Shown piece by piece: positions 1 to 64,000 of a stretch of 64,000 nt of DNA. Source of the stretch: Ruditapes philippinarum (lineage: Eukaryota); NCBI RefSeq assembly GCF_026571515.1, contig NW_026856964.1:124001-188000 (forward strand). The letters run 5' to 3'. A program made the position numbers and the translations under genes. The notes beneath the pieces are model-generated. The model saw nothing but the letters and a program-made list of their open reading frames with translations. It made no database searches and had not been told where the DNA came from. Numbering within the stretch: position 1 is the stretch's first letter; every line of letters begins with the position of its first letter.

Positions 1-2969
1 CTACTATAACGCCATATACTAGTAAGAAAATCTGCCATTTTATTGCTCTCCGCGCGTTCCGCCATCTTGAATTCATCGTTGAATAAACAAAAAACACAAT
101 GCAAAGTTTCAAAGCAATTCATCCTGCTACTATGCAAATAAAAAAAACTATATGAAAACCTCTTACAAACAATTATGCGTTGAAAAGTAATTGGCAAAAT
201 GAAATTCTCAATAAACATACGATAAGATGTATGAACATTATTATGTTGTTAAGAACTACAATTGATTCCAAAATGCATTTCTTTCTAAGAACCAAGATGA
301 TTAAGAAACGTGATTAAGATGATTTGAGAAACGTAACTAATTAACAGCCCATTTGTATTTAAAACAGCATGCATCTAGATTCATGCTTATTTTCATGAAA
401 AATTTGAAACTGTATGTAAAAGTGAAATATTGTGAAGTGATCAAAGATAACAATTTTCATTATTTCAAACTTCGCTTACAATCCACGAAAATTACCAATT
501 AGAGGCTAAAAGTTGCCAAAAATAACTCTTACTGTGTTAGTCACGCAGTAGAAATATTGTGATTAATACTGCAAATCAGTCATAAAACGCATTTAAAATG
601 TAAATTATTACTGTAAAAGTCAAACATCTGTTTACTTTACATAAAATTTATTACATTTTTCTCAAGATTGATTTTCTTGAAATTTTTTGGATTATCTGGA
701 GGCATGCACCTTTAAGGATAATAAACGAAAACAAAACGTCATCAAACATGGATAACACGGAAAACAGTTAAACAAAACATTTTGTGAGGTTCTTGTGATA
801 AGTGAAGAAAAGTAAAAATGTACGTTTATTCAATATATACAATAATTGACGGTACCATTTTTTCTGAAATGTAAATATGCTCAATTAAAGTCGCCTATTG
901 TTCGATTTATTGGTATAAATTTAGTGTTACTTTTGTGTTCGATGCTCTTATTCAAAGTTTGACGAAAAACTTTCGTTTTAGTTGTATATAGGGCCATTTA
1001 AAGCTTTATTTTCTACTGTATGTACATTTTTTTCTTCAAAATATTCACTCCATAGAGGATATTAAATGAGTGTAAGTTCAATACTGAATTTATTGCACGA
1101 GTTGAATAAAATTATATTATGCGAGCCTCAGGCGAGCATAAATTATTTTATTCAACGAGTTCAATTAATAAAATACACTAATTAAATATTCTATTAAATT
1201 CCTAAATTAAATTAAAGACCGTTTAATGTGAAATAAGAGTCATTTTTCAATGACGCGCCTAAAGTATAACGCTAACATTTAGCGCGTCTTTACGCTATAT
1301 TTGTATAACGCTAATGACGTAACGTCAAAATATTTGCACGGCGTGCAATACCATATTTACGGAGTCGCCAAATCGGCACGGGTGTGTGATAAATGTAACT
1401 ATAAAACGTTGTCCATGTTTGCTGACGATCTACGTTAAATATTAAATTTTATATTTTATTATACATCGGAAAATAAAGTCAATATTGATTGAAAATATGT
1501 CTGCCGTTCAGAATCAATTAAGGGATACATGTTGTTACCCAATTTAATCTGAAATATAATCAACAGGTAAACATTGATATAGAAAAAACAAGTATAGTGT
1601 ACGATTATACAGAATTCACGCGACCTTGAAGCAGAAACGCTACGCATGCGCTGTGGATTTTTTTATTGATCGACCTATGTATCACTGCAGAGTGCTTAAA
1701 GCTTAAAAAATTGAGTGCAGTTTCTGGACCCCTAAGTTTTGTGGAATTTTGACTGATTTATGTGAGTATGATTTGTGATACAATGTTTTATTTATTTTAC
1801 TATTGTAATACCTTTATGTAACCCTACTGCATCAAAGTAACCTGGTTTATAGTTTATATACATGTACATTATAGAATCCACGGAAATAAATAGAACAGAA
1901 CGTTGTTCTAAATATTAACCTAGGTTTCTATTATGAAACAGGTGTTCTTATGAATGGGTTGGCATTTGATCGCTTTGCAGCATTTATTCAATAAATATAG
2001 AGGTATCTGGAATAAGTGGAAAAATAATAGGATATCTAATTCGTTTTATGTTTATTTCTTTTCTTTTTCTTTTTACAATACTTGTTCGTTTTCTTTCCTG
2101 AATGTATTTTCATTAAACCAGAAAGAAATTAGCAAATTATTAAAATCTATAAATCTTAAACAGCTCCACTTTTCGAAGGAAAGAAATAATGGAGCTAGTA
2201 AGCCTTTTTCGTTAAAGCCTGTTATGCCTCAGAAATGCTATTTCTATTTCATTTTATTTCTCAAAAACTTTCTATATTTTGGTATCTTAATTGTTACAGT
2301 TTCCAAGCAAATAAATACTTATAAGCCATATAGATGAACTATCTTTGTTCTTTTAGCAATTGGTATAGTTATAGTGAATTAGTATTTTGTATTGAAGTCA
2401 AAATACTAAAATGTATAAAACAATAAAAAAAAATAAATGTTAAAATTTTATTTAACAACAGAACTCATCTGAACAACATTTCATTTTTCATGAGACCCAT
2501 AACATGGCACAATATAAATTAAACATATTCAAACGAGGCCATCAACTTGTATACACCGATGTGTTTTAAAATCTCAAGTATAAGGTTTTAAAATTGTTTA
2601 CAGATGTAGCAGACTTGATATAATCAGGAAAGCCTCTCAAAATTCAAGATCCAGAATAAACAAAATACTTAGTATTTGGTCTAGGTAATGAAAAGTTGAA
2701 AATCAAATGATGAACTGTGAACATCTGACGAAAAAATAAGACATTTGAAAATAACCTGTTTCCTTTTGATAGCATCCAACGATATTACTCGTAACGCATG
2801 CAATGTATTGGTGATATTTTAGTAATTTTCTCATTTTATATACCAATCGTAGGTATTTGGTTGGTTAGCAACTGGAACATAATGTACATTGACCAATTCA
2901 ATACCTGGGACATGTTTTGAGATACTACAAATTGATATTTTAGTGACGGTTTTGAGTTTGGAAAACAAT

Positions 2970-5900
2970 ATGTCTTCTGCTGAAGAAACTAACAGGCTAC
3001 TGGACGGAAATGATTCTGGAAATGAAACGCTGACCTTTAATATTGGAGGAGTCGTATTCGAAACATACAGGTACATTTTTTTGTGTTTTTTCATGGAAAT
3101 ATAATTATGTATTGTCCGAATGGAAATAACCGTACTAGTGACATTGTCTATGGCAAGAGGATGATAAGGTCATTAGGTCCGATGTCCATGTCGTAGTGAC
3201 AGTTTGTGTTCGATCATTAACTTGAAAAAGCCTAGATGTGTACAGCATAGTAGGGACAATAGTGTGTAACTGACCCCTTTTGATTTTGAGGTCATTAAGT
3301 TATTTGGTCAAAGTAACAGCGAACTCCCGTGTAAAAATATTGTCCGATTAATTCCTAAAGGGTATTAAACCCATCATTTTTAAGGTACGAACTGTCGGGA
3401 CATTGTCCAGGACCAGGGGATTACTTCTTACTTTGAGGTTATAAGGTTAAATGCCAAGGTTAAAGCGACATTTTGTGAAATATCATTTAAATATGATCAA
3501 TTCTTTTAGATGGTCCAGAGGTTAGGAGGTCAAAGACAAAGTGACACGTGTGTTACTCATAATTACAGTTTCCTCGGACATAGTAAAACATGTCAGCGCG
3601 TGTCAAATGGCCTGTGACAGCTAAAAAATGCCCTGTACCTCACTTACTGCAGTGTTGTTTATTTAACATCTCCTTCTAGATCATTAATTCCTGCACGCTG
3701 AATATTAAATAACGCTTAAGCCGGTGCTAGGGTGCGTGAGAGATGATGCACTTTTACGTTTATCTCAAATGAACCGAGTCTGAACTGTTCATACAATATG
3801 TTTGTTTGAGACATCATTTCAAAACGTTGTAACATTTTACTAGCAAGTGAACATAATTATACTTTATTATGCCAATCATGTTATAATGTATTTTTGTATA
3901 TTTTTCGACATATTTATATATATTATCGTCAGAGTAATGGTTTGGATTTACGGCGCACGACATGATTCTGGTTTTATTTTCATTGTTTTATGTTACTAAA
4001 ATTAATCGTGTTTTGCTAGAATTAAATGGTAAATATTCAAAACGCAAAAAAATGCTATTTTGCAAAGAAACCAAACTATTTTGGGATAAAATCAACAAAT
4101 AACAAAACAAATACAAAACTATTCGGATCAAAATAAGAATCAATTTTACGATCAGGATCAATATTTTGATCCACTGTAAAATACCTGTATCTTGCAAAAA
4201 TAACAATTTTATTCTAAAATTTCATAAACTTTCTATCGCAAGTCAAGTTTTCTCAAATTGATATTAGATATTTCATCTTATAGCATAAACAATGAATATT
4301 ACAGTTTTTTAATTTGATCCTGATCTTGATCTTGTTCGAACACAGGATCAGGGGTTAAAACAACCTCACCTGCTGGAACAAAGAGATGCATAGACTCAAG
4401 AAGCTCAAAACCACATAATCATCTCTGACGATCACGTAGTGTTAAACATAAAGACAACAACTCAGCCACAAGTGGATATGGTAGATGTCATAAGAAAAAT
4501 ATTTTTGTAAGAACCAATACATAATAATTTAGTACCCATTAGACAATCTATCGTTTTGTTACAGATCTACAATTATGCAAATACAGAGCGGTCCTCTGAG
4601 AGATGAGAGTTTTCTGAAGACAATTCATAGACCTGGGAAAAACGATTACTTCGTTGATAGAGACCCGGATGCCTTTAAGGTTGGCACGCTATTCCATCTT
4701 AATATATTATGCTTGATATTTCCGTTAAATGAATATTAAACGGGTTATCTTTTATGACATATTAGGTTTCATTTAAAAGTTATATTTGTTTTAATGATAA
4801 CGATTGTATTGGACAATGACCAAGAGTAAAGTACTGAAAGCGTCATGATTTTGAGCTGGATAAGATACTGAATCCAGAGCACGGTTATGACAGAATGTAG
4901 ACTATAAAACATTAATTACATCTATCTGTAATAAGCCATATGCAAATTTAAGGAAACGAAGCGGAGCAGGTTTCAAAAAAGTAATTAACAAAACGAAAGT
5001 GTTTTGACCATCACCTTAGTGACCCCATACTATACACAAAGTTAGAGGGTTACCTAAGATATCAACCTACATATTTCATACCTGCATGCCAATTATGAAA
5101 AAAAACATAAGTATATTAATTGACAAAAAATATATGAGCAAAAGTGTAAATATCTATTTGAAGTGCCAGTGTCATTGACACAAGTGACCTCTTACTGTTC
5201 CTAAATTAGGAAGGTCATTTAAAGTATTTTTCGCCCGCTTAGCTCATACGAAGCCAAATGTCCCCGTGGCAACTGATCTCATACATTGAGTGTTTACTTT
5301 TATGAAAATTCTGGTATTGGTGATCATTAGTTGATTGGCAAAAGATGCTCTTAGATGAGAAGAGTCTTTTCATGTCACGTGACATAACCCTTTGCTTTTT
5401 CTTCAGAAGCATTAAGTAACAACTTAGATATTTGTCGTGCAGATGTATTTGGATAAGCTATTCTGACGGCAGTAATATATACATCAATTTATTTGAATTT
5501 TAATGTCTATCCCTTAACAATTTTTTAAGGGAATGGATAAAGGCATACCTTTCTGTTTTTCAAAATATTAATACTATTTATTGAATACTACACCAGAGAA
5601 AGATTTCTAGAATGTCTGAGCCATATGCTAGTACACTTTAATAAAGGTTGTTTCCACCAAATTGTATTGTCCATATTAAAAACTCTTTTGCATTGGCACA
5701 AATCCCTGTATATTGTTCTGACAATTTAGGTAATGACAAAGTGAATTTTGTAATAAATTATCAACTTAAAATGTGCATGTGTGTATTTTTCATTGTTTCA
5801 GATTGTGTTAAACTACCTACGAACTGGTCAGGTCTTTATCCCGTCAAATATCGATGGTCCTCTTGTAAGGAATGAACTCCTGTTTTGGGGCTTGACTCCC

Positions 5901-7366
5901 GATTTGAAAGTGATTGTCAGCGGAGATGTTCCATTGGTACTTATATGTATTCCTATATATGCACACCTTTACACCCTCGAATAGGGACAGAGCAAATACA
6001 TACAATCATGACAATGTTTCATCAACAAATGTTAATATAATTATTTATATATTATTACCATTGACTTTAAATGGTACCATGTGCCAACCAATTAATTCCC
6101 AAAATGGAAACTATAGCTGTCGATACAATTGTCCTATATTAAAAAGTTATGTGCATTTGGCCATTGCCATGCAAATTCTATTTCCTTAGAGAATAAACAC
6201 ATGTAGTTATACAACTTACGAGTACTGGCACTTTAGGTCGAACACAGATTTATATTTGTGACCCTCCAAATATATTCACGTATTGTACAATTAAATGTTT
6301 GATTTGTATACTTTAAAATATGAACACAAAAGAACAGTTTACCATATGCGTTTTCTTAAAGCATTAAAACTTTATATATTCACATATACAAATGTATATT
6401 AGTAATCATATACACTTGATTTCTTTCATGAAGAGATACATGTATATTTATCTTTTTTTTCAGCCCTGTTCTACAATTGGACATTTAGCAGGTGTGACTG
6501 AAAACAGAAATATGTCTCCTCACACTGGAACGGGAAACAAAATCTGGAATATTCTTAGCAACCCGGAAACGTCAATGTGGGCGAAGATATATGCCGGGAT
6601 ATCATATTTGTTAATGTTCCTGTCGGTAGTGATTTTCGTTGCTGCAACAACGCCATATTTGCAAACAGTTCAAACAGTAGAAACCAATACCACTGTGGAC
6701 CGTGCCTATGATAAAATCACTGAAGAACCCGTTGTACTTTTTGAGGCTACCATCATATCTTTAGTATGCTGTTTATTCTTTACTGTAGAATACATCTTAC
6801 GACTGTTGTACTCACCAAACAGGAAAAACTTCATTTTGTCTTTCCTTGGTATAATAGATTTCTTGGCTATTCTACCAGAATGGCTGTTTTTTATCATTGA
6901 AAATCTTGTAGCGGTTAATAAGTCGTTAATGTTTCTTCGTGTTTTGAGAATATTCCGTATCCTCCGTCTTTTGAGAATTTTTAAACATTTTAAGGTAATG
7001 CTAGGGACGGACGTTTTCGTGTACACTTTAAAGTCTTGCTTTGGGCAGTTGATTTTTATTACTTTCCTTTCATTCATTCTTGTTGTATTCTGGGGAACTC
7101 TTGTATATACCGTTGAAATTCCTGGTGACGAGTATGGAACACGATTTGAAAGTATTCCAGGCGCGTTCTGGTGGGCAGTTATAACAATGACAACCGTGGG
7201 TTATGGCGATATGTTTCCGGAAACTACTCAAGGACAAATAGTGGCTTCTTTATGTGCAGCATGCGGTCCATTGATAATTGGACTTCTTGTTGCTGTTCTA
7301 GTTAATGGTATGATCAACAGTTCCAGGAAGATAAAAATCCTTCCCAAGAAAATGATGTTTAAATAG
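2970..7366 (+). CDS. Voltage-gated potassium channel subunit, divergent Shaw/Kv3-like (copy 1, intact, about 417 aa, 4 coding exons)
   Basis: Exons 2970-3070, 4565-4679, 5802-5936 and 6464-7366 have GT-AG boundaries and matching phases (2,0,0). T1/BTB motifs: NIGGVVFETYR, YFVDRDP, LNYLRTG, GPL..EL.FWGL. S4: RVLRIFRILRLLRIFK. Selectivity filter: TMTTVGYGD. The exon 3 donor could alternatively lie after 5909. Confidence 0.9.
4040..4345 (-). repeat. Old dispersed repeat, homologous (inverted) to about 28570-28870
   Basis: Shared segments caagatcaggatcaaa.ttaaaaa, caagata...acagt.gat.aaaatattgat and tttatcccaaaa..gtttctttgca are collinear on opposite strands. Confidence 0.65.
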
Positions 7367-12600: not shown

Positions 12601-15600
12601 TTATTCCTGAATTTTATACACAAAATTGTGTAATGATGTTAGAAATTCTCTTGACTTGAAGTTCTCCTTCATTTTTGAGAGCTCGTAATGGCGGTGTTTA
12701 TCGATTAATTTTATCCAGCTGGCGTTCCTCTGTCTCTTCTTCTGTGATATAATGTCGTCAAATTGTCCATCCTTATAAAGAGTTTTAATTAATTCTGGAA
12801 CATCTTGTTTAAACTTTTCTTTTCCGCTAATATAATAAATATACTATTAGTAAAATACATAATGATTTTGATATTTTAAATACGCTTTTACAATTATAAA
12901 ATGATACAATTTGGGTTGATTTCGTTATACAAAACTCACGGTTTAATTGATGTATAATAAGAAACTTACAAATCTAGTAGTTCTTTATCCTTTGGTTATT
13001 ATTAAATATTCTTAAAGGTATATGCGTAATGATTTGGTTCAGTGAAATATTATTTTGATTGCACACAGTACAACCTTTGAATGTTTCGGACAAACATAAT
13101 GTTCTAAACGAATTAGGCTTGCAGGCCTATCCGTGAACATATATTCTACTTTGCATTATTTGTAAAGAAATCCAATCAGAGAACACAATTTCCTTAACTC
13201 TTAAAGCAAATGCAATGCATATATAAACAGCTCAAAAAAACATGTACACATACTTTGATATTACGTGATCAACTAAACCCAAATTGTGAGCAGTCATTGC
13301 AGATATCGGTGTTGTCTCACGAACAAGTTCCCTGGCAGCTGTATGACCAATGCGTGCTGGAAGGAAATATGTCCAATATTCCGAGCCGAAAAGATTCATC
13401 GATTTGTACGACGGAGTAAGAAAAACACCCTGAAAATATTGAGGTAGATTTAAAATATGACAAAAAGAATTAAAAGGTGCCTACTATAACTTTGAATACC
13501 TTCTGTATCATTTGTATCAGAAGCAGAAAGATATATCTTTTCAAATCTAGCTACCAACTATCAGACAGTTTTATAAATTTTGAAAGGATTTTGCGTACAT
13601 AAAAAAAGAATGGTTGAGTTGTTCCTCATAATGGTTCAATCTCCCTATACATATGTAGTGATTATATTTATCGAGAAAAAGGGAAACAATTAAACACTTT
13701 CATAACGTCAGGAAATATAATCAGATTTTGCGGAATGAAACTTTTCCCCTTTTATTGTAGATGAAAAGTATTGCAAGACTTTAATTTCAGGAAGTTTAAA
13801 ATGTATCGAATTTCATTGAAATATATATCTTTAAGGTAGACACCGTAAAAAAGATAAATAACATAACGATTTTTTTCCATTACCGGATGAGCAACTGTGA
13901 CGTCACAAGCTAGTGCAAACATTGCGCCCCCTGCAGCAGCGTTTCCTTGTAAGACTGCAACAGTTGCTTTGTTATGCATTTTTACCGTGGTGCTTATGAC
14001 ATCATTGATTTTGTTTATGTTGATCCATGCTTCCGCCTGCTTGTACATGCTGTGCTCAATAACACACAGATGGATTCCTGTAAGTATTATAATCCTTATG
14101 TTATCGTACTTTCATCGTATTTAGTAGGAATCTAGAACAGATTTGTACAAGAAAATAAGGTCCTATTTATAGTCTTCCAAAGAAAAAAAAACGAAATTAC
14201 GCTAGAACGCGCGGCGTTTATGGATAATTTTAAATCTTGGACGGTTTCAATTTAAGATGTAATTTAATTTCACTTTAGATACTTGATACATGTCCTTTGA
14301 TGCCTTTCCTGCATAATTTGAGATAAATGTTTAGTATCGACACGATCACGCAAAAGATCTATATAAGTTTTATTCTTTATTTTACACTCCTTAGGCTTTA
14401 TTTACAAAAAATGTTCTAATACAGTCAGGAAGGTTAACATTCGTGCCTTTTTCATATCGTGTATTGGCTGACAAGTATTCCTCGATTTAGGAGGGTTTTT
14501 GTTTTTCTGAACAATGATCGAAAAGTAAACATATCTAAGAATTTGTTCTGTGCTCTCTCATTACTAGTAATTAAAAAAAAATATTTTGAAAATATCAAAC
14601 TCCTTTATACATATAGATAATAATTGCAAATTATGACAACCTTGTACGTGTATGAGATCTACATTAATCAAAATTTAATGTTTTATGATAATCAACAAGT
14701 TGATAAATGGTTGGTTAAGCTCATTTGAAGTTTGTGAAGTTATTTCCAGAACTTAAACTTTTTAGCATGGGCCTATGTTCATTGCTGTAATTTTAACTGT
14801 TTGTACATATTTTAAATCTTAATTGCAATCTAACTCGTTTTCATAATATCGTTTGATCTCAACTGAACACAGATTTCTCACGTAGTAAATCCATATGTAT
14901 CAAATGTATGTACTTTAATAACTTTGTTTACTGATTTATCTCAAATACTTATAGAATTAAACAAAATGGCAATTATCACGCGTGAGCATATTTTAGCTTA
15001 AATAAAACAAAATGTTTTGATAAACATGCATCGGTTAAAAACATGAAACAACCTAGATGTTGAAAGAATTAAGTATACAAAAAGAGATTATTTTTTTCTG
15101 TCACAAACGTTTTTTTAAGTTTTTAGCGATACAGTTAAAGTGTAATTGGTACATAAATGTAAGTAAAAGAAATCAGGTACATGTAAACATGTTAAAATGA
15201 CACTTTAAAGCATCAAAAGTTAACAATTTCAAGTGTCAAATTTACTCTTCAATAGGTGTAAGGTACACTAGAAAATGAATCAAAAATTTCAGAACGTTAT
15301 TATAGTATAAAGTGAAATAATTGAGTTTTAAGGGAACAGTTTACATATATGTATTTAAGTGTATGTGGTCAAAGTGGCAATGTGGCACTCAAACAAGTAC
15401 GTGTACGCTTCTGTATTATCGTAGACGTACATTGTTGCATACAACCGAGTTCGTTATGTGGCACATTAACAAGTGAAACATGTACCTGTGGAAGAGAATC
15501 TCTCGCCACCCATAAGTACAACAACTTTAACATCAGGCATCTCGTCAATTAGCTGTAATGATTGAACAAGTCTCGCAGCCTGGTGTTTATCCATAGCTCC

Positions 15601-18600
15601 ATTATAAAAGTCAAAGTGTACATAACAAATTGGCCCGTCGTGTACCACTTGAATATCATCATAAGCACATGGCTCATTAATCTCGGGTAAATAGATTTCT
15701 CTGTTCGCCTCGTGAAGTATTTTCATTGACGGCAATTTGATAGTGTTAGTCTTCGATGCCTGAAAAAATATTAGTTTAAAAGTTTCAGTATAAATTCGCT
15801 ACATGATGAAGGATGGTATAAGAGTATGCTATATCATGTAATATCTAGATCACTTTTAATTGGGTAAACCTCCAAAACATATTGTATCATAGTTTTGGAG
15901 ACCTTTCTTGTTGAAAATGGTGTCAGGGTTAATTGTATACATATATAACTGCACAGTGCATTAACTGGATGGGGTAATTAGTTACCCGCACTCCAGAACA
16001 TGCCCATTGATTGGGCTCATTTTTGCTGGGGTTTACATTTATGTCGCCCTATTCTAAAATGGGTATATACAATTTCTCTTTTTTGGGAAAAAGGGGTTAA
16101 AGGTTCAAGAGTTGTAACTTTAATTTTAATAACTCCTAACAGTGTTGGACTTCTGGATTGGTATTATAGATGTCAACATGTGATAAAGCAATTTGTTATA
16201 TACCTTTATAATTTTGCAGTAATTGTAAAAATTAAAAAAAAAAATTTGGAGATAGACCAAAAATGTTTATTTTTAGATTAAAAAATTACTCTAAAAAGGT
16301 TTGCGGAGATATGACAAAGTAAGGTCTAAAATTGTAATCTTTTTTGATTTAGCATTTTTAAGAGTAAATAATTTAAACTATAGAATATTAGTAGATTTTA
16401 CATTCTAAAGAACATTTTTAGCCAGAGTGGTTGAACCGCTGACACTGAATCATTTTATCTTCGTAAAAAACTATGGTCAAAGTGTAAATTCATTCCACGT
16501 GAATCCAAGTGGGCCTTTCTCGATAATAACAATATAAAAAGTGTGCAATAAAAAAGAAAAACAAACATTTACAAAATTTTTAAATGCATGAACTTGCTAA
16601 AAAAATGAACATATTTTGAAACCATTATGAAAAATGAAATGATTGTAACATCTCTAAATATTGTGATTTTAAATGATACAGATATAAATTATTATTACCA
16701 TTTCATTTCATTTCATTTTATTGGCAAATCGGCAAATAAACATTACCTTTGGCCCATTAACAGAGTATCATGAAAAATATGGCCAAAAAAGTTAAATAGT
16801 TAACAAATATTACATCATACAATAATATAACAAAAAGAGTACAAGAATTGAAACAATTAAGAAAAGAGTTACATCTTCAAGAGACTGTTGCCCTCAACTT
16901 TAATGCATTAGAAAAATAGTGAGTTCACAAATTTAAGAATAAAAGCTTTTTTGTTATTAGTGGACAATATAGTCGAACATTTTAGTAAAGGTAAGCAATG
17001 AAATGTTTTTCCTAAATATTTGGTTCTTATAAACAGTATAAATTTTTGACAACATAAAAGGAAGTGGTATTCTGATTCAATAGAGTTATATATACATAGT
17101 TTACATTGCGATCGTTTCTGAAATCAATGTATCAATGTTAAAATGTTACCAATAAATTCTTTTTAATTCACACAATTAAAGTCAATACGAACATGCATTC
17201 AAGTTTCAAGTAAATTGTTTGTGGTTTAATATCAACGTAATGAAAAAATATCTGCTCAAGTTTCTTAACAATCTTCAAGATTGCAAAAATCGTCGTTTCA
17301 AAGATTTAACATCCAGTGAATTTTGCAATCTCCCATATTGGTTTTTGTCGCACAACGTAGATACTGGAACAATCCATGAACAGGCTAATCAAACCGAGCC
17401 GGCAACATTTTAGATCATGCCGTATTGTGCTTTAAAAGAATTCTGCTATTATCTAATAAATATAATCATTGATGACCCGGAGAACACTGAAACTCGCAAT
17501 GCAAACTTAAAATCTATGTTTTGACAAGACAGTGGTATTCCGACCCATTGGAATGTTAAATATCTATTTATTTTGTGAATATTTTAAAGACTTGAAACAA
17601 TGATTTATCTGAAACTGATGGCAAGTTCAAAACTTCCCCCACAGACTTGATGTTGTTGATAATAAAATTCCAATAGTTTTGTGGAAGTTCTGGCTAACTG
17701 CAGTCACAAGTTCTAAGAGACAATAATTTCTTGTAAGGACAACGTCTGATAATGTAAGTAAGTCTGACCTGAAATGGACAAAATATTATCATTAACAATT
17801 AAACAACAACAATGCTCGATACTCCAAATAGTTCAAAATAGTTCATACGAATATCCGAATATAGTTATCCGAAACTATGTGATTGTGAAACTTTGAGAAA
17901 TATATATAAAATAATGATAATACTATGAAACAAATACTAATACAAAATATAAATTCAGTTATAAAACGTATAGAAGCTAAAATATATTACTTACATGCTT
18001 CAGAAATCATTTTTTAACTGTTACTTTCCTAAATAGCTGGCTGATTTAGATACGATTGTTGTTGTTATCACTGGAGTTAGAACAATTATATTGTCAGGCC
18101 CCTTCAGGTCACATGACATATATTTTTCAACTTGATTGGCTGGCACGAAAGATTAGTCTAAAAGTGTTACATGTGTTGGAGATACGACGTAAAAAGGCTA
18201 ACAAAAAGCTTTCCATTGGACATAGAACAAAATACAGACGCTATATCTACAAAAGTATGACGTAAATCTTCACAATTTTTGTTTTGGAGATAGAACAAAC
18301 TAATACTAAAATAAATGTGCAGTTATCTCATTTTTGGTAAAAATGGAGTTAGGACATTTTTAGAATAAGGCGACGATATTGTGACGGCAGAGAAAGGGAA
18401 AGCGACAGAAATGTCATATTCAGATGTTCGTTCATTGGTTCATTTTTGCCGGGGTTTCATATTTTGACAACAGGGAACGTGCTTTTATGTTTGACTATGA
18501 TACAAAAGAGAAAGAACACCAAAACACTAGGCAATCTGATTAATACTAGGGGGCTATGCCCCCTCGTACAAATAAGATAGCCTCGTGTTTCGGTGCTCTT

Positions 18601-20195
18601 TCTATTACTAATTACATTGTTTACATTTTATCGACTTCAGCAGACAACTAGGTAATTATTTATCTTCTAATCAATACTTAACTAACCCAAACTTAATTAT
18701 GTAAATAAAATGATCAGTTTATAGAAAGTTTCCGTCTTTATGTTATTTATTTATTTTTTTTATTTTTTATTATTTTTTTTTTTTTTTGGTACTTTTTTCC
18801 ATTTTATCTCAAATTGTCATCAATATGTTTGTACATGCACATACATAATTTTTATTGGGAAAAAAGGTTTTTAATGTTTACTTTTTTCATTTGTCCGATC
18901 CATAAAGCGTTGTCGTCCCCAGCTTTAACCAACATTGCATTCTGTCTTTGTCCTATAAACTGCCCTGGCTGAGCCGCGGTTATCAAATTCTTTAATAATT
19001 CGCTTTCTCTTCCTGTTTCAATATGTGCATCAAACAGACGGTATACATTTTCCCCACCAAGTTGTCTAAATCTACCAATTGCTCCTGGTGATGTATCTGA
19101 CATGCGTATTTTTGCTGAAATCTTTTCCGCTGATTCCTCCCAATCTATACGACGGTCGTCATGTTTCATATTTCTACGAAAGGTTCCGGTGATTTCAGGA
19201 CAAGAATATTGAGGAGTTGGTGCTATCCCCTGACAATATCGAGACAAAGAGTCTAGAATGCACCTGACTGCAGAATCAGCAATACTGCCGTTATACAAAG
19301 ACGATTTAGTGCTTCCTTTAGGAACCCTAAATGTATCTGTACTCCATATATGACCGCCATCAAAAACATCTGATGCCTCTACTACAGTAACTCCCCATTC
19401 ATGTTTGCCTTCTAAAATCGCCCAATCTATAGAACTAGCTCCACGATCTCCCGCTATTCCAGGATGAAGGATCAGACATGGCTTTTGTTTATAAATTGAT
19501 TCCGGGATTCTTGCTTTAAGAAATGGACAAATGACAATATCTGGCTGAAATTTGTTGATTTCATCTTGCATTTCTTCATTATTCCTAACACTCACAGAAC
19601 TGCAAACTACCTGTAGCGGAAGTTAAAATGTTTATTAAAGTATGATTATATATACTGTGTGTCAATACTGTAATGTTTCAGATAATCTTGATAATGAAAA
19701 TGTACGTTACGTTCATTAAAATCCGTCAATTGCATTTCCAGCTAGCATGACACAATCATATAATATTAGAGTCCACTATTTCTGATCACGTTTGATTATT
19801 TTAATTAATTTACATGTTATGCTGTGCAAACAGATATAAAATACATCAAAACTATGACTGGCTTATTAAACATCTCTCATATAGTCGACAAAATATGTGT
19901 AATTACTCTGCTCCTTTTATTATCTACTGAGTATTAGCTATCTTTATAATTTCGAAAAATTTACAACCTCATACGATTTTATCGTTTCTTCTACTCTTCT
20001 TGTTAACGTATTTACAGCTCCGCTCATCAACAAGACCCGGACATGTTTTCGTATAGACACTCGGAATTGGCCCGGTTTCGGAAGCTGGAAATTGTGAACA
20101 AACATTAAACTTTTGCAAGTACAGTAAAACCTCGCTAATGAGACCACTAAACGGACTTCGCATACCTGTTCTTCATTATAACGGGTTTGTCTCAT
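12601..20195 (-). CDS. hoxX: HoxX/HypX-like protein (N-terminal formyltransferase + C-terminal enoyl-CoA hydratase/crotonase domain), about 580 aa, spliced
   Basis: Minus-strand exons are 20166-20195 (tentative), 19968-20084 (donor could be 19965), 18882-19610, 15486-15759, 13884-14077, 13254-13429 and 12601-12826. All are GT-AG, phases are compatible and there are no internal stops. HoxX hallmark blocks appear in order: FQPDIVICPFLKARIPESI, HPGIAGDRGASSIDWAI, WGVTV..A...DGG.IW, IDW, HFDFYNGAM, VLMGG, GIHL..IE, LQGNAAAGG, Y..M.LFGSEYWTY.LP.RIG, EL.KM..NF, FVYK. Confidence 0.9.
16699..17125 (-). mobile_element. 5'-truncated non-LTR retrotransposon (LINE) 3' fragment in a HoxX-like intron
   Basis: The minus strand encodes a decayed C-terminal motif, CKLC...IESEYHFLLCC, followed by AATAAA and an (ATGAA)n tail at about 16699-16722. 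Confidence 0.6.
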
Positions 20196-20529
20196 CAATG
20201 AGTTTGGTATGACAAAAAATGCTATTTAATAAAATATACCGGCTTAAGCAGATATTAACATTTAAACATGAAAATTGTGAACTTTTAAATTTAGAAACAT
20301 CATAAAAATCATCTATAATACTCATCGGATAAATATTAATTATATTATTGAATGGCAAAAAAGGACATCAGAATACTAGATTTGATTGTGTATAGAATAC
20401 TAAATCGTTAAAAGTCAACAATTACACAATTAATCAGAAATATTTTGGTCTGATAAAGCATCATTTCCAGCGCAACATTTTTGTATTAACGGTGTTTATG
20501 ATGCAAATACCACTCTGTTTATCATCATC

Positions 20530-20705
20530 NNNNNNNNNNNNNNNNNNNNNNNNNNNNNNNNNNNNNNNNNNNNNNNNNNNNNNNNNNNNNNNNNNNNNNN
20601 NNNNNNNNNNNNNNNNNNNNNNNNNNNNNNNNNNNNNNNNNNNNNNNNNNNNNNNNNNNNNNNNNNNNNNNNNNNNNNNNNNNNNNNNNNNNNNNNNNNN
20701 NNNNN
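20530..20705. other. Assembly gap (N run)
   Basis: Run of N. Confidence 0.99.
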
Positions 20706-20778
20706 TAAATCATTATCATATTTTTTATTTTTATAATTATTATCATTATTATTATTATTATTATCGTTATTACTATTA

Positions 20779-20816
<38 letters not shown>

Positions 20817-21056
20817 TTATTATTATAAATAACTATTATTTTTATTATTATAAATAATTATTATTGTAATTATCATTGTAAATTATTATTGTTGTAATTA
20901 TTATTATTATTATTATAATAATTTTTTTATTATTTTTATTATAATAATTTTTATTATTATTATTATAATTATTATTATTATTATTATTTTTATTTTTATT
21001 TTTATTATTATAATTATTATTATTATTATTATTATTATTTTTACTTTTATAAATTA
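20706..21056. repeat. Degenerate (ATT/AAT)n microsatellite
   Basis: Imperfect trinucleotide array flanked on both sides by gaps. Confidence 0.95.
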
Positions 21057-21232
21057 NNNNNNNNNNNNNNNNNNNNNNNNNNNNNNNNNNNNNNNNNNNN
21101 NNNNNNNNNNNNNNNNNNNNNNNNNNNNNNNNNNNNNNNNNNNNNNNNNNNNNNNNNNNNNNNNNNNNNNNNNNNNNNNNNNNNNNNNNNNNNNNNNNNN
21201 NNNNNNNNNNNNNNNNNNNNNNNNNNNNNNNN
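21057..21232. other. Assembly gap (N run)
   Basis: Run of N. Confidence 0.99.
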
Positions 21233-24200
21233 ATATGGTAATTTTGCAATTTAAAGCTTTCATTAGGAAAAACATTTTCATTACGTATTTTATAATTAAC
21301 TAACTCTTACCTACAAAAATTACTGCGTTTAAAAAACTGTCTTACAATTAATTTGTAACCATGATATGTGGATACATTTGATAATCAAGATATTTCTTAG
21401 CAATATAAACTATAAATGAAAGGCATATAAGAAAGAAAAAAAGATTGTTTTATGAAAATACAAGCCAAATAAAAAAAAAACAAACAATAATATGAACAAC
21501 AATAAAAATCCGTTATAGAATACATAATTTTACATATATGAATATGTGTTTATTTAGACAAAGCCGATGACGCATTTGAAAAAAAAATCTTTCTAAAATA
21601 GATAATAAATTGAATGTTTTATTATCACGTAATAATTCTATTTTCGAAGGTTATAAATCTATAATTTTGAAACCCTCACATAGAAATAACAAAGAAAGAA
21701 AGGAGTGGTGGGGGCGGCGGGAACGTACGGTTCAGATTGTTTCCCTTTTCCATGTTGTTTTAGCTTTGACATTGTTCAACATAGATATTCAGTTTAAAGT
21801 ATCTTGTTCTTTTTTACATTTGATTTCACTTGCAAGACTACATTTTGTTTCAATATATTCCAAAATGAATTCAAATACTAAAGTACCAGACCTCTCTGCT
21901 ATTATAATAAAATTTTAAATACCTTGTTCATAATGCTGTTCATTTTAACAATGAAATTACAATTCCAAGCTTTTTGTAACACATACACATGAATTTATTA
22001 TTGTAACGATTCGTTTCACAGCCCAACAAGTTATTACGCCAGTCTTTAATAAAGAATAAAAATTTAAATTCGAAATCTATATTGCCACATAAATTCTCAA
22101 ATATACTAATATATCCAGTTTTTTAAATGTTTGAATAAAAATAACTTGACTGTATAAAGTATCCTTTATTATCCAATGTAACTTTTATAAAAAATAACGA
22201 AAAAAGAGACTGGCAAAGAAATAAACAATTTAAACAAGAATTCTAAAATGATGCAAAGCGTTAACAAACACTCATTGCGCATGACATATTATTCTGTTTA
22301 ATTTTGAAGTTTGAAAATCTTTAAAGTGGGTTGGTCTACAATTGACAATTTTTTTCCGGAAGTACTTTAATATTGTAAAAAGCAAAAGAAATTATCATTT
22401 TGGATTTTATTTATAATTTTATGCTTGAAAATAAAAAAAAAAAAAAAACAACAATTGTTGATAAAGTTCTTAGTGATTTAGTTTTTATATTATGAATAAT
22501 GCTATTTTGTTTTTGAGAACATTTTATTATATGATATACAACGTAAAACACGTATTATTGGATCATGTATCTCACACTTTCCAAAAAACCATCCATACAT
22601 GATATTTCTAGATACTAAATAATATTGACATTATTTCTTTTTTTTATTACACACATTCCATTATAGAATAATCAGCTTTCACAAAAATATTGCAACATTC
22701 TAATCATAAATTGATAAAAAGAGGATGACTTTTATTCACATTTCAAAACGACTCTCTTTAAAGTCATAGACAAAAACTATACAAAAAACACCCTTTTGAA
22801 TTACATATTTTCTCGAAAAATATTCTGTTCTGTCAGCCGTTTACTCGATTACTTTTGAACCACATTTTAAGTAAGATGGGGTTGCTGTAAAATGCATTTA
22901 ATATCATCTCAGTGCATTTTCTTTTCTGTTTAAATGACTTGTAACACGTAAGTTAGAAATAACATTTACCATAATAAACTTGCGTGACGGCTACAACTAC
23001 ATTTTATTTCAAGTCTATTTTACCTAAATATTTTGACCTCGAAACATCGATAATGAAAACCTATATAATCATATACGTATGATTAATAATCATTTAAACT
23101 TTAGAAACAAGTATATTTGAAAAACAAATTACATCTTCTTCATGATCATGACCATGATCACCTATAAGTTGATAATGCCTTACAGTAAATTTTTGTTTTC
23201 ATCTCGTAAATCCTATTGATTTTTAAGTTTGTCATGAAACAATCATGATATTTTATGAGGTAAATATATTTTGAATTAGTATGTCATTTTTTTGAATTTG
23301 TGGCCAGTTTCGACGCCCTCCTGAGACTAAGAAATAAACTGATAGGAGTATAATCTAATGTAAACGTTAATTTACTGGATTACAGATTCAGTTAATTCCA
23401 AATGAAATATCTTTCAGTAAATATCGTTGTTTGTGAGTATTTGAGTATTCAAGTTGATACTTTTCTGCTTAGATGTAATAAATAAGGTTTTAAAAAAGGA
23501 TTACCCAAAATAATCAAAGTAAGAACGAGTGAACAGCACTGGTGAATACCTTTGGTGTGCAGATCATTTAAGTACAGGCTCATAGATTATGGTTGATTTA
23601 ATGGTATATGCCAAGAATAATTGATTTTGTCTAGCATCTTGAATAAATTGAAACATATCAACTGTCAGATTTTCAATATTACGTTTCAAACACGTGATGT
23701 TTTAATATAAATCATTATTTGGTTAAGCCTCGTTGTCAAGTCCAGTCTCATAATAGTTAACATCTAATGCATATCGTACCCCATAAAGCCCTGTTGTTAC
23801 TTTCAGTATCCAAAAAATCTATATCTAGGCACCAGCCTAGTCCAATATAGGTTTTGTAGTTGTGTAAGAGTCCAGGAAAATCAGTATTGTATTCAACAAT
23901 GTATAAAGAATTCTTTATTTCATTCATCAGTTTTTAGGTCTAGACAGAACCTTTTTATTTGAGTATAATATAGAAATGATATGGATATTTGGACTCGGAA
24001 AATGTAAAAGAGGCTAGACGGAGTACAATAAGGATTTAACAGGGTTTTCGGACCTGAAAAAAAACGAGACTTGATTGAGTAAAATAGTGATGTGATATAG
24101 GTTTTTTTTGACTCGAGAAAAGAAAACTTGGCTAAATTGATCAAATTTGATCCAACAATGATTTTTTGTTATAAAATTATAATTTAAATCATTTTAAGTC

Positions 24201-25164: not shown

Positions 25165-28100
25165 ATAGATAGATTTATTTCGGCAAAGGAAGCATATACA
25201 TAGTTGACAATATAACATAGGATAAAATAATGAGCATTATTAAATACTATATCACATACGAGTAAAACTATGACATGCTCACCAAAACCAAGGATAACAC
25301 AAAAAAGGGCAAAAAAGCTCTTATTTCCATTGTGGTCCTTTGTATTGGCGGCATGACATAGAGAGGCAAACCTTAATATGATCATGTTTAAAAATACTAA
25401 TAAATCATAAAAATGTATATCACAGTCAAATCTTGAGTTAATAATACTCCTGTTTACAGCTAGGATTTAAAACACATTACTAAAATTGTAATAAGATAAA
25501 TAGAAGACAATTAAAAATCCTGAGTCGAAATATGTAAAAAAATGTTTAAAAAAAATTTAAATACTGTTCATAAGATGACATTTGATGGCAACCTTAAAAC
25601 TTTGTAACCTGTTGATCTCCGTTAACTTTACAGGTAAATCATTCCATAATTTAATACCAGAGAAAGCAAATGATTTAGAACCCTGGCCTTTGACCTTACG
25701 TAGACAATATCCACCCTTTTGACTAAGTCTTGTACTATAATTATGAATGGAATCTTGTGAAATAAAGTATTCAGACATGTAATCCGGAGATAGGCCATTT
25801 CTTATCTTAAAAACATGACACAACATTATCTGTTCAACTCTTTTGTGGACCGGTAACCAGTTAAGGGACTTAAAGTGGGATGGGTCAATGTGGGTTCTAG
25901 AGTCCAAGTCAAGTACAAATCTCATTATTTTGTTTTGACAAGTTTGTAACTTATTTTTTAAAGACTGTGTCAAGCTATTATACCAAACATAGCATGCGTA
26001 ATCATAGTGACACTGAATAAGAGACATAACCAGAAGTTTCTTGGTATGCTGAGTAAGAAACTCTTTCTTGCGGTAAAGAAATTTTAACCGAGAGTTGGCC
26101 TTCTTAAGAACAGACTCGGCCATGGCGCAAAATGACAGATTTTGGTCTATAGTAATCCCAAGATACTTGATAGATGAAGTTGATTCAATGGATGTACCAG
26201 AACAGGTTATATGCAGGTTAGATTGTGACCTAAGTTTTTGCCTGGACCCAAATAAAATTGACTCGGTTTTACCCAAATGCAATGATAACTTATTGTCCAC
26301 TAACCATTGGCTGACCAATTCCATATCATCTGTCAATGCCTTTTCAACAACAGACAAACTTTTACCAGATACAAGGATACCAGAATCATCAGCATACAAA
26401 AGCAATTTATTTTTGACCACAGCTGACATATCATTTACATAAATTAAAAAGAGAAGGGGTCCAAGGATTGAGCCCTGAGGAACACCACATGTTATTTTGG
26501 AATTGGAAGAATAAGTACCAGAGACATCTACAAGCTGCTGTCTATCTGATAAATATGATTTGAACCAATTTAGGACGTCAATACTAAGACCTGATGCTTG
26601 CAGTTTCATTAAAAGAATGGAATGGTCGACTGTGTCAAACGCTTTCTGCAAATCCAGCAGCACCATACCAACAACATTACCTTTATCATTTTCATACCTG
26701 ATAAAGTCTGTAAGGTGAATCAGACAAGTATCAGTAGAGAAGCCACTCCTGAAACCTGATTGAAATTTATACAGCAGATCTTTATCCTTAAAATAAGCTT
26801 CAACCTGGTCATAAACCACCTTTTCAAGGATTTTAGATACAACATTTAAAATGGACACAGGCCGGTAATTACCAACAGACAATTTGTCGTTCTTTTTATA
26901 GAGGGGAACAACTCTTGCAGATTTAAGATCATCAGGGACTTGACCTTGTATAAGGGATAAGTTTATGATATGAGCTAATGGACTAGCAATAACTGGGGAT
27001 CCATCTCTGATAAAACGTGAGGGTATACCATCTAAGCCAGTAGCTTTTTTGACACCTAATGAAGTTAAGTATTTAAGAACTTTACTTTCAGAAACAATGG
27101 AAAAAGAAAAACTGTTTGCAAAAACACCCTTGTTTGCATAAAAAGTATTAACAAAATTCGTACCAAATTTATGCATACTTTCTGGCAACTTTTCAACAAG
27201 TTTACATGCAACTGTTGTATAAAATTTTGTTAAATGATTCAGCAATAGGTTTCTTTTCAAAACACACATTATCATCAATATTTAAACAAATATTTGAACT
27301 GGTTGAAGATGAACCCTTCTTGGAAGGCAAACCAAGATTTTTAACAGTCTTCCATAAAGAGGTTGAGTCATTTTTGTTCTCATCCAGTGTATTAGTAAAA
27401 TATTCCTTTTTTGCTTTGGCAACAAGATACTGAACTTTGTTCTTGAGAGTCTTAAATGAATCATAATTATCACAGTTTCTATCACATTTATATTTATTAA
27501 AAGCTTTATCCCTTTCATTAATTACACTAAGAATGTCTGAGTCAATCCATGGTTCTGTTCTCTGTTTAATTCTGGTCTGTTTCACAGGTGCTATATTGTC
27601 TATCACAGATAAAAGTAACTGTTTAAATATATTCCAGGCATCATTTACATTATCACTTAGCAAAACAGGAGATCAGTCAGTATCTAGAAGACTAGCTTGA
27701 AAGTTATCTTTGTTATAATTTTTCAAAGATCTTAAAGTGACATTGTTATGAAAATAAAGAGGAATTTTACTGACTTTTCTTGTACAAAATATTAAGCTAT
27801 GATCACTAAATGAAGTATGAATTACACCTGACTGAGTAATTTTATCATTATCAGACACCAATATCAAGTCAATAATAGTTGCACTTGTAATACTAACTCT
27901 AGTAGGTTCTGAGATCAATTGTTTGTAATGAAACATATTAATAAATGACTTAAAACATTGCAAAAGAGGATAAGACTTAACTTTAGACACATCTGTATTA
28001 AAATCTCCTAAAATTATAGATTCACATTGTAAAAAGTCACTACTTGACGAGCATAAAGAGTCTAAAATTGTATAAAAGTTTAGTTGCACAGGAGGTCTAT

Positions 28101-28500
28101 AAATAACACCACATAAGATAGGTTTTGATTTTGGTAAAAGTATATCAATCCATGTAGCTTCTAATTCTTCATGCTTGAGATCATCACGTGTGTTGTAGGA
28201 TAAATCCTTCCTGATATAAATACAAACGCCACCCCTTGTCTGTTTCGATCCCTGCGCTGAATACAATAGTTGTCGATGTTAACTTAAGAATCTGGAACTG
28301 AGTCATCTAACCATGTTTCGGAAACACAAATACATGCGGCTCTAGATCTACGAGCTACAGAATTAATTTCATGTAGTTTTGGTAAAAGACTTCGAGTGTT
28401 TACATGAATAAAATGAAGACCACGTTTATTGAAAACTTTAAAATCACTTGTGGTGGAACTAGAAGTGTCAGTGCTTAGAACACGTTCCCTAGCAAGGTCG
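25165..28500 (-). mobile_element. Decayed non-LTR retrotransposon (CR1/L2 group) with AP endonuclease + reverse transcriptase
   Basis: Endonuclease motifs GLHFIHVNTRSL, CVSETWL, GDFN, IDLI and SDH lie at about 27673-28430. The RT ORF at 25557-27278 has YRPVSIL, QSGFR, LDLQKAFDTVDH, GVPQGSILGPLLF, YADD and YLGI. ORF2 is broken by a stop (about 28284) and frameshifts (about 28240, 27670, 27230). The 3' UTR ends in AATAAA plus an (ATCT) tail near 25165. No ORF1 was seen. Confidence 0.92.
25557..27278 (-). CDS. Reverse transcriptase portion of LINE ORF2 (remnant open frame)
   Basis: 573-aa open frame with all RT motifs including YADD. It is disconnected from the endonuclease by frameshifts. Confidence 0.8.
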   Translation of the reverse strand: MMIMCVLKRNLLLNHLTKFYTTVACKLVEKLPESMHKFGTNFVNTFYANKGVFANSFSFSIVSESKVLKYLTSLGVKKATGLDGIPSRFIRDGSPVIASPLAHIINLSLIQGQVPDDLKSARVVPLYKKNDKLSVGNYRPVSILNVVSKILEKVVYDQVEAYFKDKDLLYKFQSGFRSGFSTDTCLIHLTDFIRYENDKGNVVGMVLLDLQKAFDTVDHSILLMKLQASGLSIDVLNWFKSYLSDRQQLVDVSGTYSSNSKITCGVPQGSILGPLLFLIYVNDMSAVVKNKLLLYADDSGILVSGKSLSVVEKALTDDMELVSQWLVDNKLSLHLGKTESILFGSRQKLRSQSNLHITCSGTSIESTSSIKYLGITIDQNLSFCAMAESVLKKANSRLKFLYRKKEFLTQHTKKLLVMSLIQCHYDYACYVWYNSLTQSLKNKLQTCQNKIMRFVLDLDSRTHIDPSHFKSLNWLPVHKRVEQIMLCHVFKIRNGLSPDYMSEYFISQDSIHNYSTRLSQKGGYCLRKVKGQGSKSFAFSGIKLWNDLPVKLTEINRLQSFKVAIKCHLMNSI

Positions 28501-35184: not shown

Positions 35185-35348
35185 NNNNNNNNNNNNNNNN
35201 NNNNNNNNNNNNNNNNNNNNNNNNNNNNNNNNNNNNNNNNNNNNNNNNNNNNNNNNNNNNNNNNNNNNNNNNNNNNNNNNNNNNNNNNNNNNNNNNNNNN
35301 NNNNNNNNNNNNNNNNNNNNNNNNNNNNNNNNNNNNNNNNNNNNNNNN
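35185..35348. other. Assembly gap (N run)
   Basis: Run of N. Confidence 0.99.
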
Positions 35349-38900: not shown

Positions 38901-39106
38901 TAGATCTTGTTAAAGACGGAAACAGATTGGACACAGCATATGTCGGTGCCCATGGTGCGATTGACTATCAGTCTGTCTCTAAAGAATGGGCTCTGCAGTT
39001 AGAGCAGGGCTCTCAAGTTTGGATTAAGGAAGGCAGTTATCATGGAGATATAATAGATGGGTGGTGTAAAACGGCTTTCACCGGCTATATGGTGGGCGCA
39101 ATGTGA
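35980..39106 (+). CDS. Secreted C1q domain-containing protein (signal peptide, coiled coil, gC1q), 212 aa
   Basis: Exons 35980-36126, 36995-37076 and 38697-39106 (phases 0,1). Hydrophobic signal peptide; coiled coil ILERLKAAEKQIQVLQKTI; gC1q motifs IGFTACL, IIFDKVFTNVGHGY, GVFTAPRRGLYVF, LQLEQGSQVWI, FTGYMV. AATAAA at 39134. Confidence 0.9.
36299..36534. mobile_element. Short TTAA-flanked MITE (Kolobok-like)
   Basis: Imperfect TIRs AGCTGCATACATCCAGAT / ATCTGCAGGTACGCTGCT, each flanked by TTAA. Confidence 0.55.
37599..37711. mobile_element. Palindromic mini-MITE / fold-back element
   Basis: About 42-bp near-perfect inverted repeats (tatgttagtattcatccgtgctgttctacagaaattagaaac) around a short spacer. 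Confidence 0.7.
38428..38665 (+). mobile_element. Degenerate tRNA-derived SINE in C1q intron 2
   Basis: The head gcccggttagctc...gtagagcg is followed by a core-like segment ttgatcatgaa...tctacggtcatt...cagtt; the B box is decayed. Confidence 0.55.
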
Positions 39107-63480: not shown

Positions 63481-64000
63481 GCTTAACCAGTATGGCTGAT
63501 AGACAAAAATAGATTGATGTTTATATTTTATTTTAAATTGATAAGTACATCGTTTGAAAGTTTTTGTGTATGATTGAGCATGAAATTGAAAGAAAATATG
63601 ATAAGCTTTTGAATAAAGCTTGAAAGGCAAGACAATAGACATTTTTGGATTTTTTTATGATGCTATGCGTTTTTGAGCAATAACTATTAGACGTCAGGCT
63701 TGACCGACAAAAACTATAACAAGCCTGTAACGTCTAATATATTGGACTATGAAAAACATTGCTCATTTTTTTCCATTCTTTTCCAGAATTATGAAAAATT
63801 CTAACAAGAGCTGACAGTATGACACTGACAGCATGCTGGAATATTTTTGTGCTTGTTTCTAAAACATGAGCCTGGATTATGTAATAAAACACGAGTCTGG
63901 ATAATCTGATAATGTAATAAAACATGAGCCTGGGTAATGTAATAATTAAGAAAGAGGAAGATTTCATTCACAAAAATACAAATAATGTATGTGATATATT

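Follow-up and report, generated by a model that had tools for sequence, protein, structure and literature searches.

Introduction

Carbon monoxide (CO) arises enzymatically in animals through haem oxygenase, the source generally recognised there; to our knowledge, no enzyme other than HypX draws on the one-carbon folate pool to form it. Here we analyse a HypX-like gene on the minus strand of a 64,000-nucleotide stretch of Ruditapes philippinarum DNA (contig NW_026856964.1, positions 124,001 to 188,000), hereafter the window. A first reading made from the letters alone (the sequence-only reading) had proposed that this locus is an intact, intron-containing animal gene for a HypX-like, CO-synthesising enzyme.

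The HypX protein of Cupriavidus necator (Ralstonia eutropha) has been shown biochemically to be a 10-formyl-tetrahydrofolate (10-formyl-THF) decarbonylase (Schulz et al. 2020, summarised in PMC12134894). It is encoded within a bacterial hyp/hox cluster and provides the CO of the NiFe(CN)2CO cofactor in oxic growth. The structures of Aquifex aeolicus HypX (PDB 6J0P, 6J1E and 6J1F; Muraki et al. 2019, PMC6802093) assign formyl transfer to the triad His74, Asp80 and Asp109, and propose that decarbonylation depends on Tyr416 and Glu426, whose equivalents in Ralstonia give a HypX-minus phenotype when mutated. Coenzyme A (CoA) is contacted at its 3′-phosphate by Ser194, Gln195 and Asn306, and at its diphosphate by Arg9, Gln15, Arg131 and Arg542; CoA binding by the Aquifex enzyme reportedly does not depend on the arginines at the diphosphate (PMC6802093). 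Catalytic and CoA-contact residues are given below in the numbering of that paper, to which 20 has to be added to obtain the chain numbering of 6J0P.

The literature searched treats HypX exclusively as a maturase of bacterial hydrogenases. Reports on HypX since 2020 concern bacterial hydrogenases, or use these letters for hypoxia/hyperoxia, and neither eukaryotes nor animals figure in a 2025 review of how the [NiFe] cofactor is assembled. The phrase 'HoxX-like' was found for Chromobacterium only, and the exact phrase used in the animal annotations nowhere. As the sequence-only reading had supposed, the same literature yielded no functional description of a eukaryotic HypX/HoxX protein, nor a description of any other kind.

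Results

The window encodes a full-length relative of HypX

The gene was modelled as six coding exons. They were read from the sequence and then checked by script, and all coordinates are positions in the window. Searches were run exon by exon, and single exons stand for the window protein throughout. The features are listed below, together with the matching residues of a 612-amino acid HoxX-like protein of the clam Mercenaria mercenaria (P0156; tblastn) and of the Aquifex HypX chain (with the expect value, E).

Coding exon 1: 20105-19968, minus strand; ATG at 20105, short basic leader, first strand and helix of the formyltransferase domain (N-T-L-T-R-R motif); Mercenaria 41-83
Possible 5′ extension of exon 1: 20106-20195, minus strand; in frame and stop-free from ATG 20195, alternatively 5′ untranslated region
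Coding exon 2: 19610-18882, minus strand; 243 codons, remaining formyltransferase N subdomain (HPGIAGD, FDGG) and C subdomain; Mercenaria 81-324; Aquifex 65-269 (E 1e-37)
Coding exon 3: 15759-15486, minus strand; interdomain linker and start of the crotonase-fold domain, with FYNGAM (Asn306 CoA 3′-phosphate tether); Mercenaria 324-416; Aquifex 271-362 (E 9e-8)
Coding exon 4: 14077-13884, minus strand; crotonase core with the GIHLC and GNAAAGG motifs; Mercenaria 415-480; Aquifex 369-426 (E 1e-9)
Coding exon 5: 13429-13254, minus strand; Tyr and Glu equivalent to Tyr416/Glu426 (YKSMNLFGSE); Mercenaria 481-537; Aquifex 429-488 (E 3e-11)
Coding exon 6: 12826-12604, minus strand, stop codon TAA at 12603-12601; C-terminal helices, ending FVYK-IQE; Mercenaria 539-612; Aquifex 491-553 (E 7e-5)

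When exons 2 to 6 were searched singly, Aquifex HypX (6J0P) was in each case the top match among solved structures, and the matches followed one another in collinear order over chain residues 65-553, with the two domains in the same order as in the bacterial protein. The identity is ∼35-40%. The best non-HypX match of exon 2 was 10-formyl-THF dehydrogenase (E 1e-13, versus 1e-37 for HypX), and with exons 3 to 6 HypX was ahead of the next match by 3 to 9 orders of magnitude. Owing to its short length, exon 1 by itself gave no PDB match, and clam homology was the only basis for placing it. The Pfam domains PF00551 (Formyl_trans_N) and PF02911 (Formyl_trans_C) were recognised on exon 2, and ECH_1 (enoyl-CoA hydratase/isomerase) on exons 3 to 5. 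NCBIfam offered no HypX-specific model, and the top match there, fmt, fell far under its cut-off.

The hydrolase domain of ALDH1L1/2 and methionyl-tRNA formyltransferase (FMT) share with the window protein the formyltransferase fold, the folate site and the catalytic His and Asp, but they match exon 2 with E 1e-13 or weaker, and they have no crotonase-fold domain. Their formyl acceptors are a phosphopantetheine thiol (ALDH1L) and an amine (FMT). They also differ at the third triad residue, where HypX has an Asp and FDH and FMT have a Ser (PMC6802093); the window protein has the Asp. Hence HypX came first for exons 2 to 6, and not ALDH1L, MTFMT or separate crotonases, the outcome that the sequence-only reading had named as fatal to its proposal. 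Judged by these comparisons, the predicted protein is a full-length two-domain HypX relative, and not a member of ALDH1L, FMT or the plain crotonases.

The fold was assessed by proxy, with the Mercenaria orthologue (65% identical) modelled in place of the window protein. The AlphaFold model, built from a 48-sequence alignment, had a mean predicted local distance difference test score (pLDDT) of 91 and a predicted template modelling score (pTM) of 0.88, and its residues 1-36 were disordered. In Foldseek this model superposed on 6J0P over both domains (template modelling score (TM) 0.82-0.92, root-mean-square deviation 2.5 Å, ∼566 columns), whereas ArnA, FMT, FDH and crotonases superposed on one domain only, with a TM of ∼0.35.

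The six exons form an uninterrupted, constrained reading frame

The coding exons total 1734 nt, or 578 codons in an uninterrupted frame (608 from ATG 20195). The five introns (357, 3122, 1408, 454 and 427 nt, in the order of transcription) are all of the GT-AG type, their acceptors are pyrimidine-rich, and the two codons that are split by introns encode Gly and Asn, matching the homologues. The G+C content is 0.40-0.45 in the exons (0.33 in the last one) and 0.27-0.29 in the introns. Stops make up ∼6.5% of intron codons (about 1 per 15), so that 578 open codons would be expected by chance with a probability of ∼1e-17. The Mercenaria protein aligned in six collinear tblastn pieces whose ends coincide with the exon borders, and at every exon junction the window protein aligned with it free of gaps; identity was 65-67% in exon 2 and 76% in exon 4. 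From these data we consider it almost certain that this is a real, constrained gene of the HypX family, and very probable that it is spliced as modelled. The intact, intron-containing animal gene of ∼580 codons collinear with HypX that the sequence-only reading had described was thus recovered. That reading had also remarked that the last two exons were absent from the list of open reading frames; this was correct for exon 6, which is wholly missed, but exon 5 is partly listed (13232-13399), and exons 1 to 4 are in the list.

Exon 1 was located by tblastn with Mercenaria residues 41-83 (20090-19962, E 4e-12) and ends at the donor GAG/GTTGTA. An alternative splice of intron 1 (donor TC/GTATGAG at 19975, acceptor at 19599) would also keep the frame, but drops six residues. 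The pair 19968/19610 was preferred because these six residues align gap-free to Mercenaria, to Potamilus and to the equivalent exon of P0001, a 56%-identical relative.

At the 5′ end, the start codon is ambiguous, ATG 20105 and ATG 20195 both being candidates. ATG 20195, the choice of the sequence-only reading, is indeed in frame and gives 608 amino acids by read-through, but the 21-residue basic leader that ATG 20105 places ahead of the first strand is nearer to that of most bivalve models (18-21 residues). Counted from ATG 20195, 37 residues precede the shared LPKPGQ motif, versus 42 in Mercenaria. A GTATGC...TTCCAG pair (∼20165 to 20085) could splice out 81 nt in this region, and tblastn with the ∼40 N-terminal residues of Mercenaria found no matching first-exon candidate in the window. 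The DNA upstream contains an AT-rich simple-repeat tract (20490-21260; 20001-22000 has 19% G+C) and two 176-base runs of N (20530-20705 and 21057-21232), which start ∼330 bp upstream of the possible gene start. A third N run is present at 35185-35348.

The catalytic residues of HypX are conserved

The motifs HPGIAGD, FDGG, YKSMNLFGSE and FVYK, which the sequence-only reading had named as bearing the catalytic residues or the C-terminus of HypX, were all found, and its five catalytic residues agree with those of the structural study (PMC6802093). For each of the five, the window has the identical residue at the aligned position: His74, Asp80 and Asp109 in HPGIAGD and FDGG of exon 2, and Tyr416 and Glu426 (Tyr439 and Glu449 of the C. 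necator enzyme) in exon 5. The exon 5 Tyr and Glu align to chain residues 436 and 446 of 6J0P, with a one-residue deletion between them, so that their spacing is one residue shorter than in Aquifex.

Conservation was analysed in 56 full-length homologues, 20 bacterial and 36 eukaryotic. The five catalytic residues are invariant in 56/56, and Asn306, the CoA tether, is present in 55 of them and in the window (FYNGAM). At least 95% conservation was observed in 61 columns; window exons cover 60 of these, and the window has the consensus residue in all 60. A Gly to Ala change in the GNAGAGG motif (GNAAAGG in the window) was considered as possible damage and rejected, since four bacterial HypX proteins carry the same change.

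HypX-like proteins are widespread in eukaryotes

The sequence-only reading had mentioned automatic 'HoxX-like' annotations in some invertebrates, and these turned up in many taxa: proteins named 'hydrogenase maturation factor HoxX-like' were found in Mercenaria, Mya, Dreissena, Branchiostoma, Nematostella, Hydra, Oculina, Tubulanus and Bradysia. Full-length relatives listed as hypothetical, without the HoxX name, occur in Potamilus, Sinanodonta, Pinctada, Mactra, Lingula, Owenia and Trichoplax, and others in the tardigrade Hypsibius and, outside animals, in Chara, a brown alga, a dinoflagellate and other protists. Bivalves frequently carry two or three orthologues. The protein matches listed included no full-length model from the species of the window itself. 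The animal proteins are orthologues of the window protein; their names are automatic, none coming from experiment, and the hydrogenase role implied by these names is unsupported by the genomes.

A tree of 57 rows was built with a quick IQ-TREE run (short search, unrooted), in which the window was represented by exon 2 only, filling 40% of the columns. The window was sister to two Mercenaria paralogues (support 98), within a clade of Mactra, Mya and Dreissena (99). The other bivalves and Lingula joined next (99), followed by the nemertean and the annelid (100). All 20 bacteria lay on one side of a single branch (100); they represent seven or more phyla, but as the best matches to one gammaproteobacterial query they are a narrow sample. 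From its position in this tree, the history of the gene is one of vertical descent within animals, and not of contamination or recent transfer. The two ecdysozoan HoxX-like proteins, from Hypsibius and the fungus gnat Bradysia, grouped with Chara and protists and not with the other animals, which could mean that eukaryotes have a second lineage of these proteins, that a transfer took place or that the grouping is an artefact of the tree.

In Ascophyllum (brown alga), Togula (dinoflagellate) and several protist transcriptomes, a HypX-like core with the same Pfam domains is fused to a complete C-terminal methylene-THF dehydrogenase/cyclohydrolase (PF00763 and PF02882; proteins P0179, P0185, P0207, P0227 and P0017), whereas the animal proteins end at FVYK or FVYH. 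Methylene-THF dehydrogenase/cyclohydrolase makes 10-formyl-THF. The fusion of a HypX-like protein to the enzyme that makes this substrate argues that the eukaryotic HypX-like proteins still use it.

An N-terminal extension was found in 34 of the 36 eukaryotic homologues (5-121 amino acids, mostly 18 or more) versus none of the 20 bacterial ones. The eukaryotic extensions are rich in Arg, Lys, Ser and Thr and poor in Asp and Glu. In the window the leader has 21 amino acids from ATG 20105 (four Lys/Arg, no Asp/Glu) or 51 from ATG 20195 (three Glu). This composition suggests an organellar import signal, most plausibly mitochondrial, and the chances that the window protein itself is mitochondrial appear about even. 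Both 10-formyl-THF and CoA are abundant in mitochondria.

No hydrogenase partner was detected in the genome

The genome (1.41 Gb in 15,874 contigs) was searched exon by exon with Pfam profiles. Neither the large subunit of [NiFe]-hydrogenase (PF00374) nor HypD (PF01924) was matched; their absence is likely, within the limits of so fragmented an assembly. As a positive control, a split methylene-THF dehydrogenase gene (PF00763) was recovered by the same search. This agrees with the premise of the sequence-only reading that animals have no such hydrogenase. Because neither partner is found in the genome, the protein most likely is no hydrogenase maturation factor in this animal, and it falls outside the functional definition of such a factor. 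The haem oxygenase profile gave no match at E 0.001 or better, a result of little weight, since short exons escape an exon-by-exon search; if real, this absence would be notable beside a putative CO-forming enzyme.

While the C. necator gene is part of a hyp/hox cluster, the clam gene stands alone among unrelated genes. The window has ∼32% G+C throughout, like the host. Two long, single-exon open reading frames for Kv-type channels (Ion_trans/Ion_trans_2) lie on the plus strand at 6392-7366 and 32680-33450. An open reading frame for a C1q-domain protein (38681-39106, plus strand) and one of the Spot14 (THRSP/MID1IP1) family (47767-48288, minus strand) are both typical of animals. Sequences resembling long interspersed nuclear elements (LINEs) were observed on the minus strand at 25557-28266 (an apurinic-type endonuclease and a reverse transcriptase over three adjacent open reading frames) and at 63142-63642 (a reverse-transcriptase fragment).

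Discussion

We lean, if only slightly, towards the view that the locus holds a functional nuclear gene, from an animal resembling heterodont bivalves, for a 578-608-amino acid orthologue in the eukaryotic 'HoxX-like' branch that works, by homology, through the CO-forming mechanism of HypX. By analogy with the bacterial enzyme (PMC6802093; PMC12134894), 10-formyl-THF would bind to the N-terminal domain, where the His/Asp/Asp triad would hand the formyl group over to the thiol group of a CoA that is bound tightly and permanently, in an extended conformation. The CoA arm would then fold back into the crotonase-fold domain, and the Tyr and Glu would decarbonylate formyl-CoA, yielding CO and regenerated CoA. 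As no HypCD scaffold would take it up, the CO would escape as free gas, and could act as a signal, as an inhibitor of haem proteins or as an antimicrobial; alternatively, the benefit could lie in the recycling of THF. Whether both half-reactions are kept and CO is formed seems to us, on this analogy, evenly balanced.

Several observations weigh against this view. i) Two of the three residues that tether the 3′-phosphate of CoA are changed (Ser194 to Thr, Gln195 to Ser), as are contacts to the diphosphate (Arg131 to Asn, Arg9 to Ala) and Gln15 (to Arg). ii) In the 56-homologue alignment, the bivalves and Lingula jointly differ from the remaining sequences at six sites, all in the crotonase-fold domain, where conservation is otherwise 90-98% (N341T, N346C, S358A, N411T, Y530F and R534M/L, in Sedimenticola numbering). 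The annelid, nemertean, cnidarian, amphioxus and placozoan orthologues retain the ancestral residues at these six sites, none of which is discussed in the structural study of the Aquifex enzyme (PMC6802093). If placed by analogy with crotonases, N341T and N346C would fall in the motif that supplies one amide of the oxyanion hole, and N411T three residues ahead of the catalytic Tyr. Because three of the substitutions thus flank the presumed oxyanion-hole and Tyr motifs, the decarbonylation half-reaction may be altered, or retuned, in the bivalve and brachiopod lineage. iii) The targeting-peptide reading of the extension is one of composition only, in a gene whose own start codon is uncertain. 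iv) Free CO poisons cytochrome oxidase, and a mitochondrial source of CO would need tight control.

The gene could instead encode a repurposed one-carbon or formyl-CoA enzyme, which would shuttle formyl groups between THF and CoA, salvaging formyl-CoA to 10-formyl-THF or hydrolysing it to formate, with CO at most a side product. Formyl-CoA could come, for instance, from 2-hydroxyacyl-CoA lyase; that of alpha-oxidation arises in peroxisomes. It fits this explanation that the bivalve/brachiopod signature spares the formyltransferase domain, that no scaffold accepting CO was found in the genome, and that the MTHFD fusions tie the family to the folate pool without specifying CO. Although this is the leading alternative, we consider it rather unlikely. 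The equivalents of Tyr416 and Glu426 are invariant in all 36 eukaryotic sequences and in the window, and it is their mutation that gives the HypX-minus phenotype in Ralstonia (PMC6802093). As the signature is absent from the cnidarian, placozoan, amphioxus and annelid orthologues, it cannot explain the persistence of the family in eukaryotes, and the C-terminus of the window protein, FVYKIQE, carries no SKL-type peroxisomal signal.

The changes at the CoA contacts (Arg9, Arg131, Ser194 and Gln195), together with the lack of a hydrogenase context, might also mean that the fold was kept and the chemistry of HypX lost, so that the protein would use another acyl-CoA substrate or act as a CoA- or folate-binding regulator. 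This is improbable, as the retention of 60/60 covered family-invariant columns and of 5/5 catalytic residues across the divergence of bacteria and eukaryotes would be unexpected for a non-catalytic protein, and the arginines concerned are those that Aquifex HypX can dispense with for binding CoA (PMC6802093).

An unexpressed relic or young pseudogene, whose frame has stayed open by chance, is suggested by a decayed duplicate in the same genome, by the uncertain start codon and by the runs of N ∼330 bp upstream. The duplicate (contig C7330, positions 1-4570) is a segmental copy of window positions 14259-22000 from which ∼2.7 kb of intron 2 has been deleted; it starts inside the gene, with exons 4 to 6 beyond the contig end. 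The DNA identity is 92% over intron 3, exon 3 and intron 2, and 86% over exons 2 and 1, with many indels. Exon 3 of this copy is intact (97% amino acid identity), and exon 2 has 92 gap positions, frameshifts and stops. The copy represents a paralogue in decay, or else a haplotype that is strongly diverged and badly assembled. Set against the clean exon 2 of the window, its broken one illustrates the state of a copy free of constraint in this genome. The window gene has 578 open codons where introns have a stop every ∼15, intact splice sites, a clear contrast in G+C between exons and introns, and has lost no family-invariant residue; moreover, many bivalves have retained orthologues, frequently two or three of them. 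That it is a relic is therefore very improbable. Finally, bacterial contamination or a recent bacterial insertion, which might come to mind because it was in bacteria that this family first became known, and because such proteins are called HypX/HoxX in some metagenome annotations, is refuted by the five spliceosomal-type introns, has the Kv channel, C1q, Spot14 and LINE flanks on the same contig, the host-like ∼32% G+C and the position in the tree with clams and apart from all sampled bacteria against it, and has next to no chance of being right.

The gene itself is not new: it is one more member of a widespread, vertically inherited eukaryotic clade already present in public databases. In presenting it as a singular discovery the sequence-only reading overstated its case, and the interest attaches to the family and not to the locus. 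What differs from the known system is that this is a eukaryotic, intron-bearing gene with an N-terminal extension and a lineage-specific signature in its decarbonylase domain, for which a hydrogenase partner was not found in the genome and a published function was not found in the literature searched. A complete HypX, with every catalytic residue, has been kept under constraint in an animal in which no hydrogenase was detected.

More tentatively, and with less than even confidence, we propose that many animals (bivalves, brachiopods, annelids, nemerteans, amphioxus, cnidarians, placozoans and tardigrades) and other eukaryotes may have a haem-independent, folate- and CoA-dependent CO synthase. 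It would derive from one ancient bacterial-type HypX, would probably be mitochondrial, and would release free CO that tunes respiration or signalling rather than serving a hydrogenase; in bivalves and brachiopods its decarbonylase site may have been retuned. Taxa that carry the gene are known for their tolerance to hypoxia. If CO is released, the family would provide a second biosynthetic route to this gasotransmitter, tied to mitochondrial one-carbon metabolism; if it is not, these proteins would carry out a formyl-CoA reaction that is new in eukaryotes. In both cases, the label 'hydrogenase maturation factor' that databases give to the animal proteins misleads.

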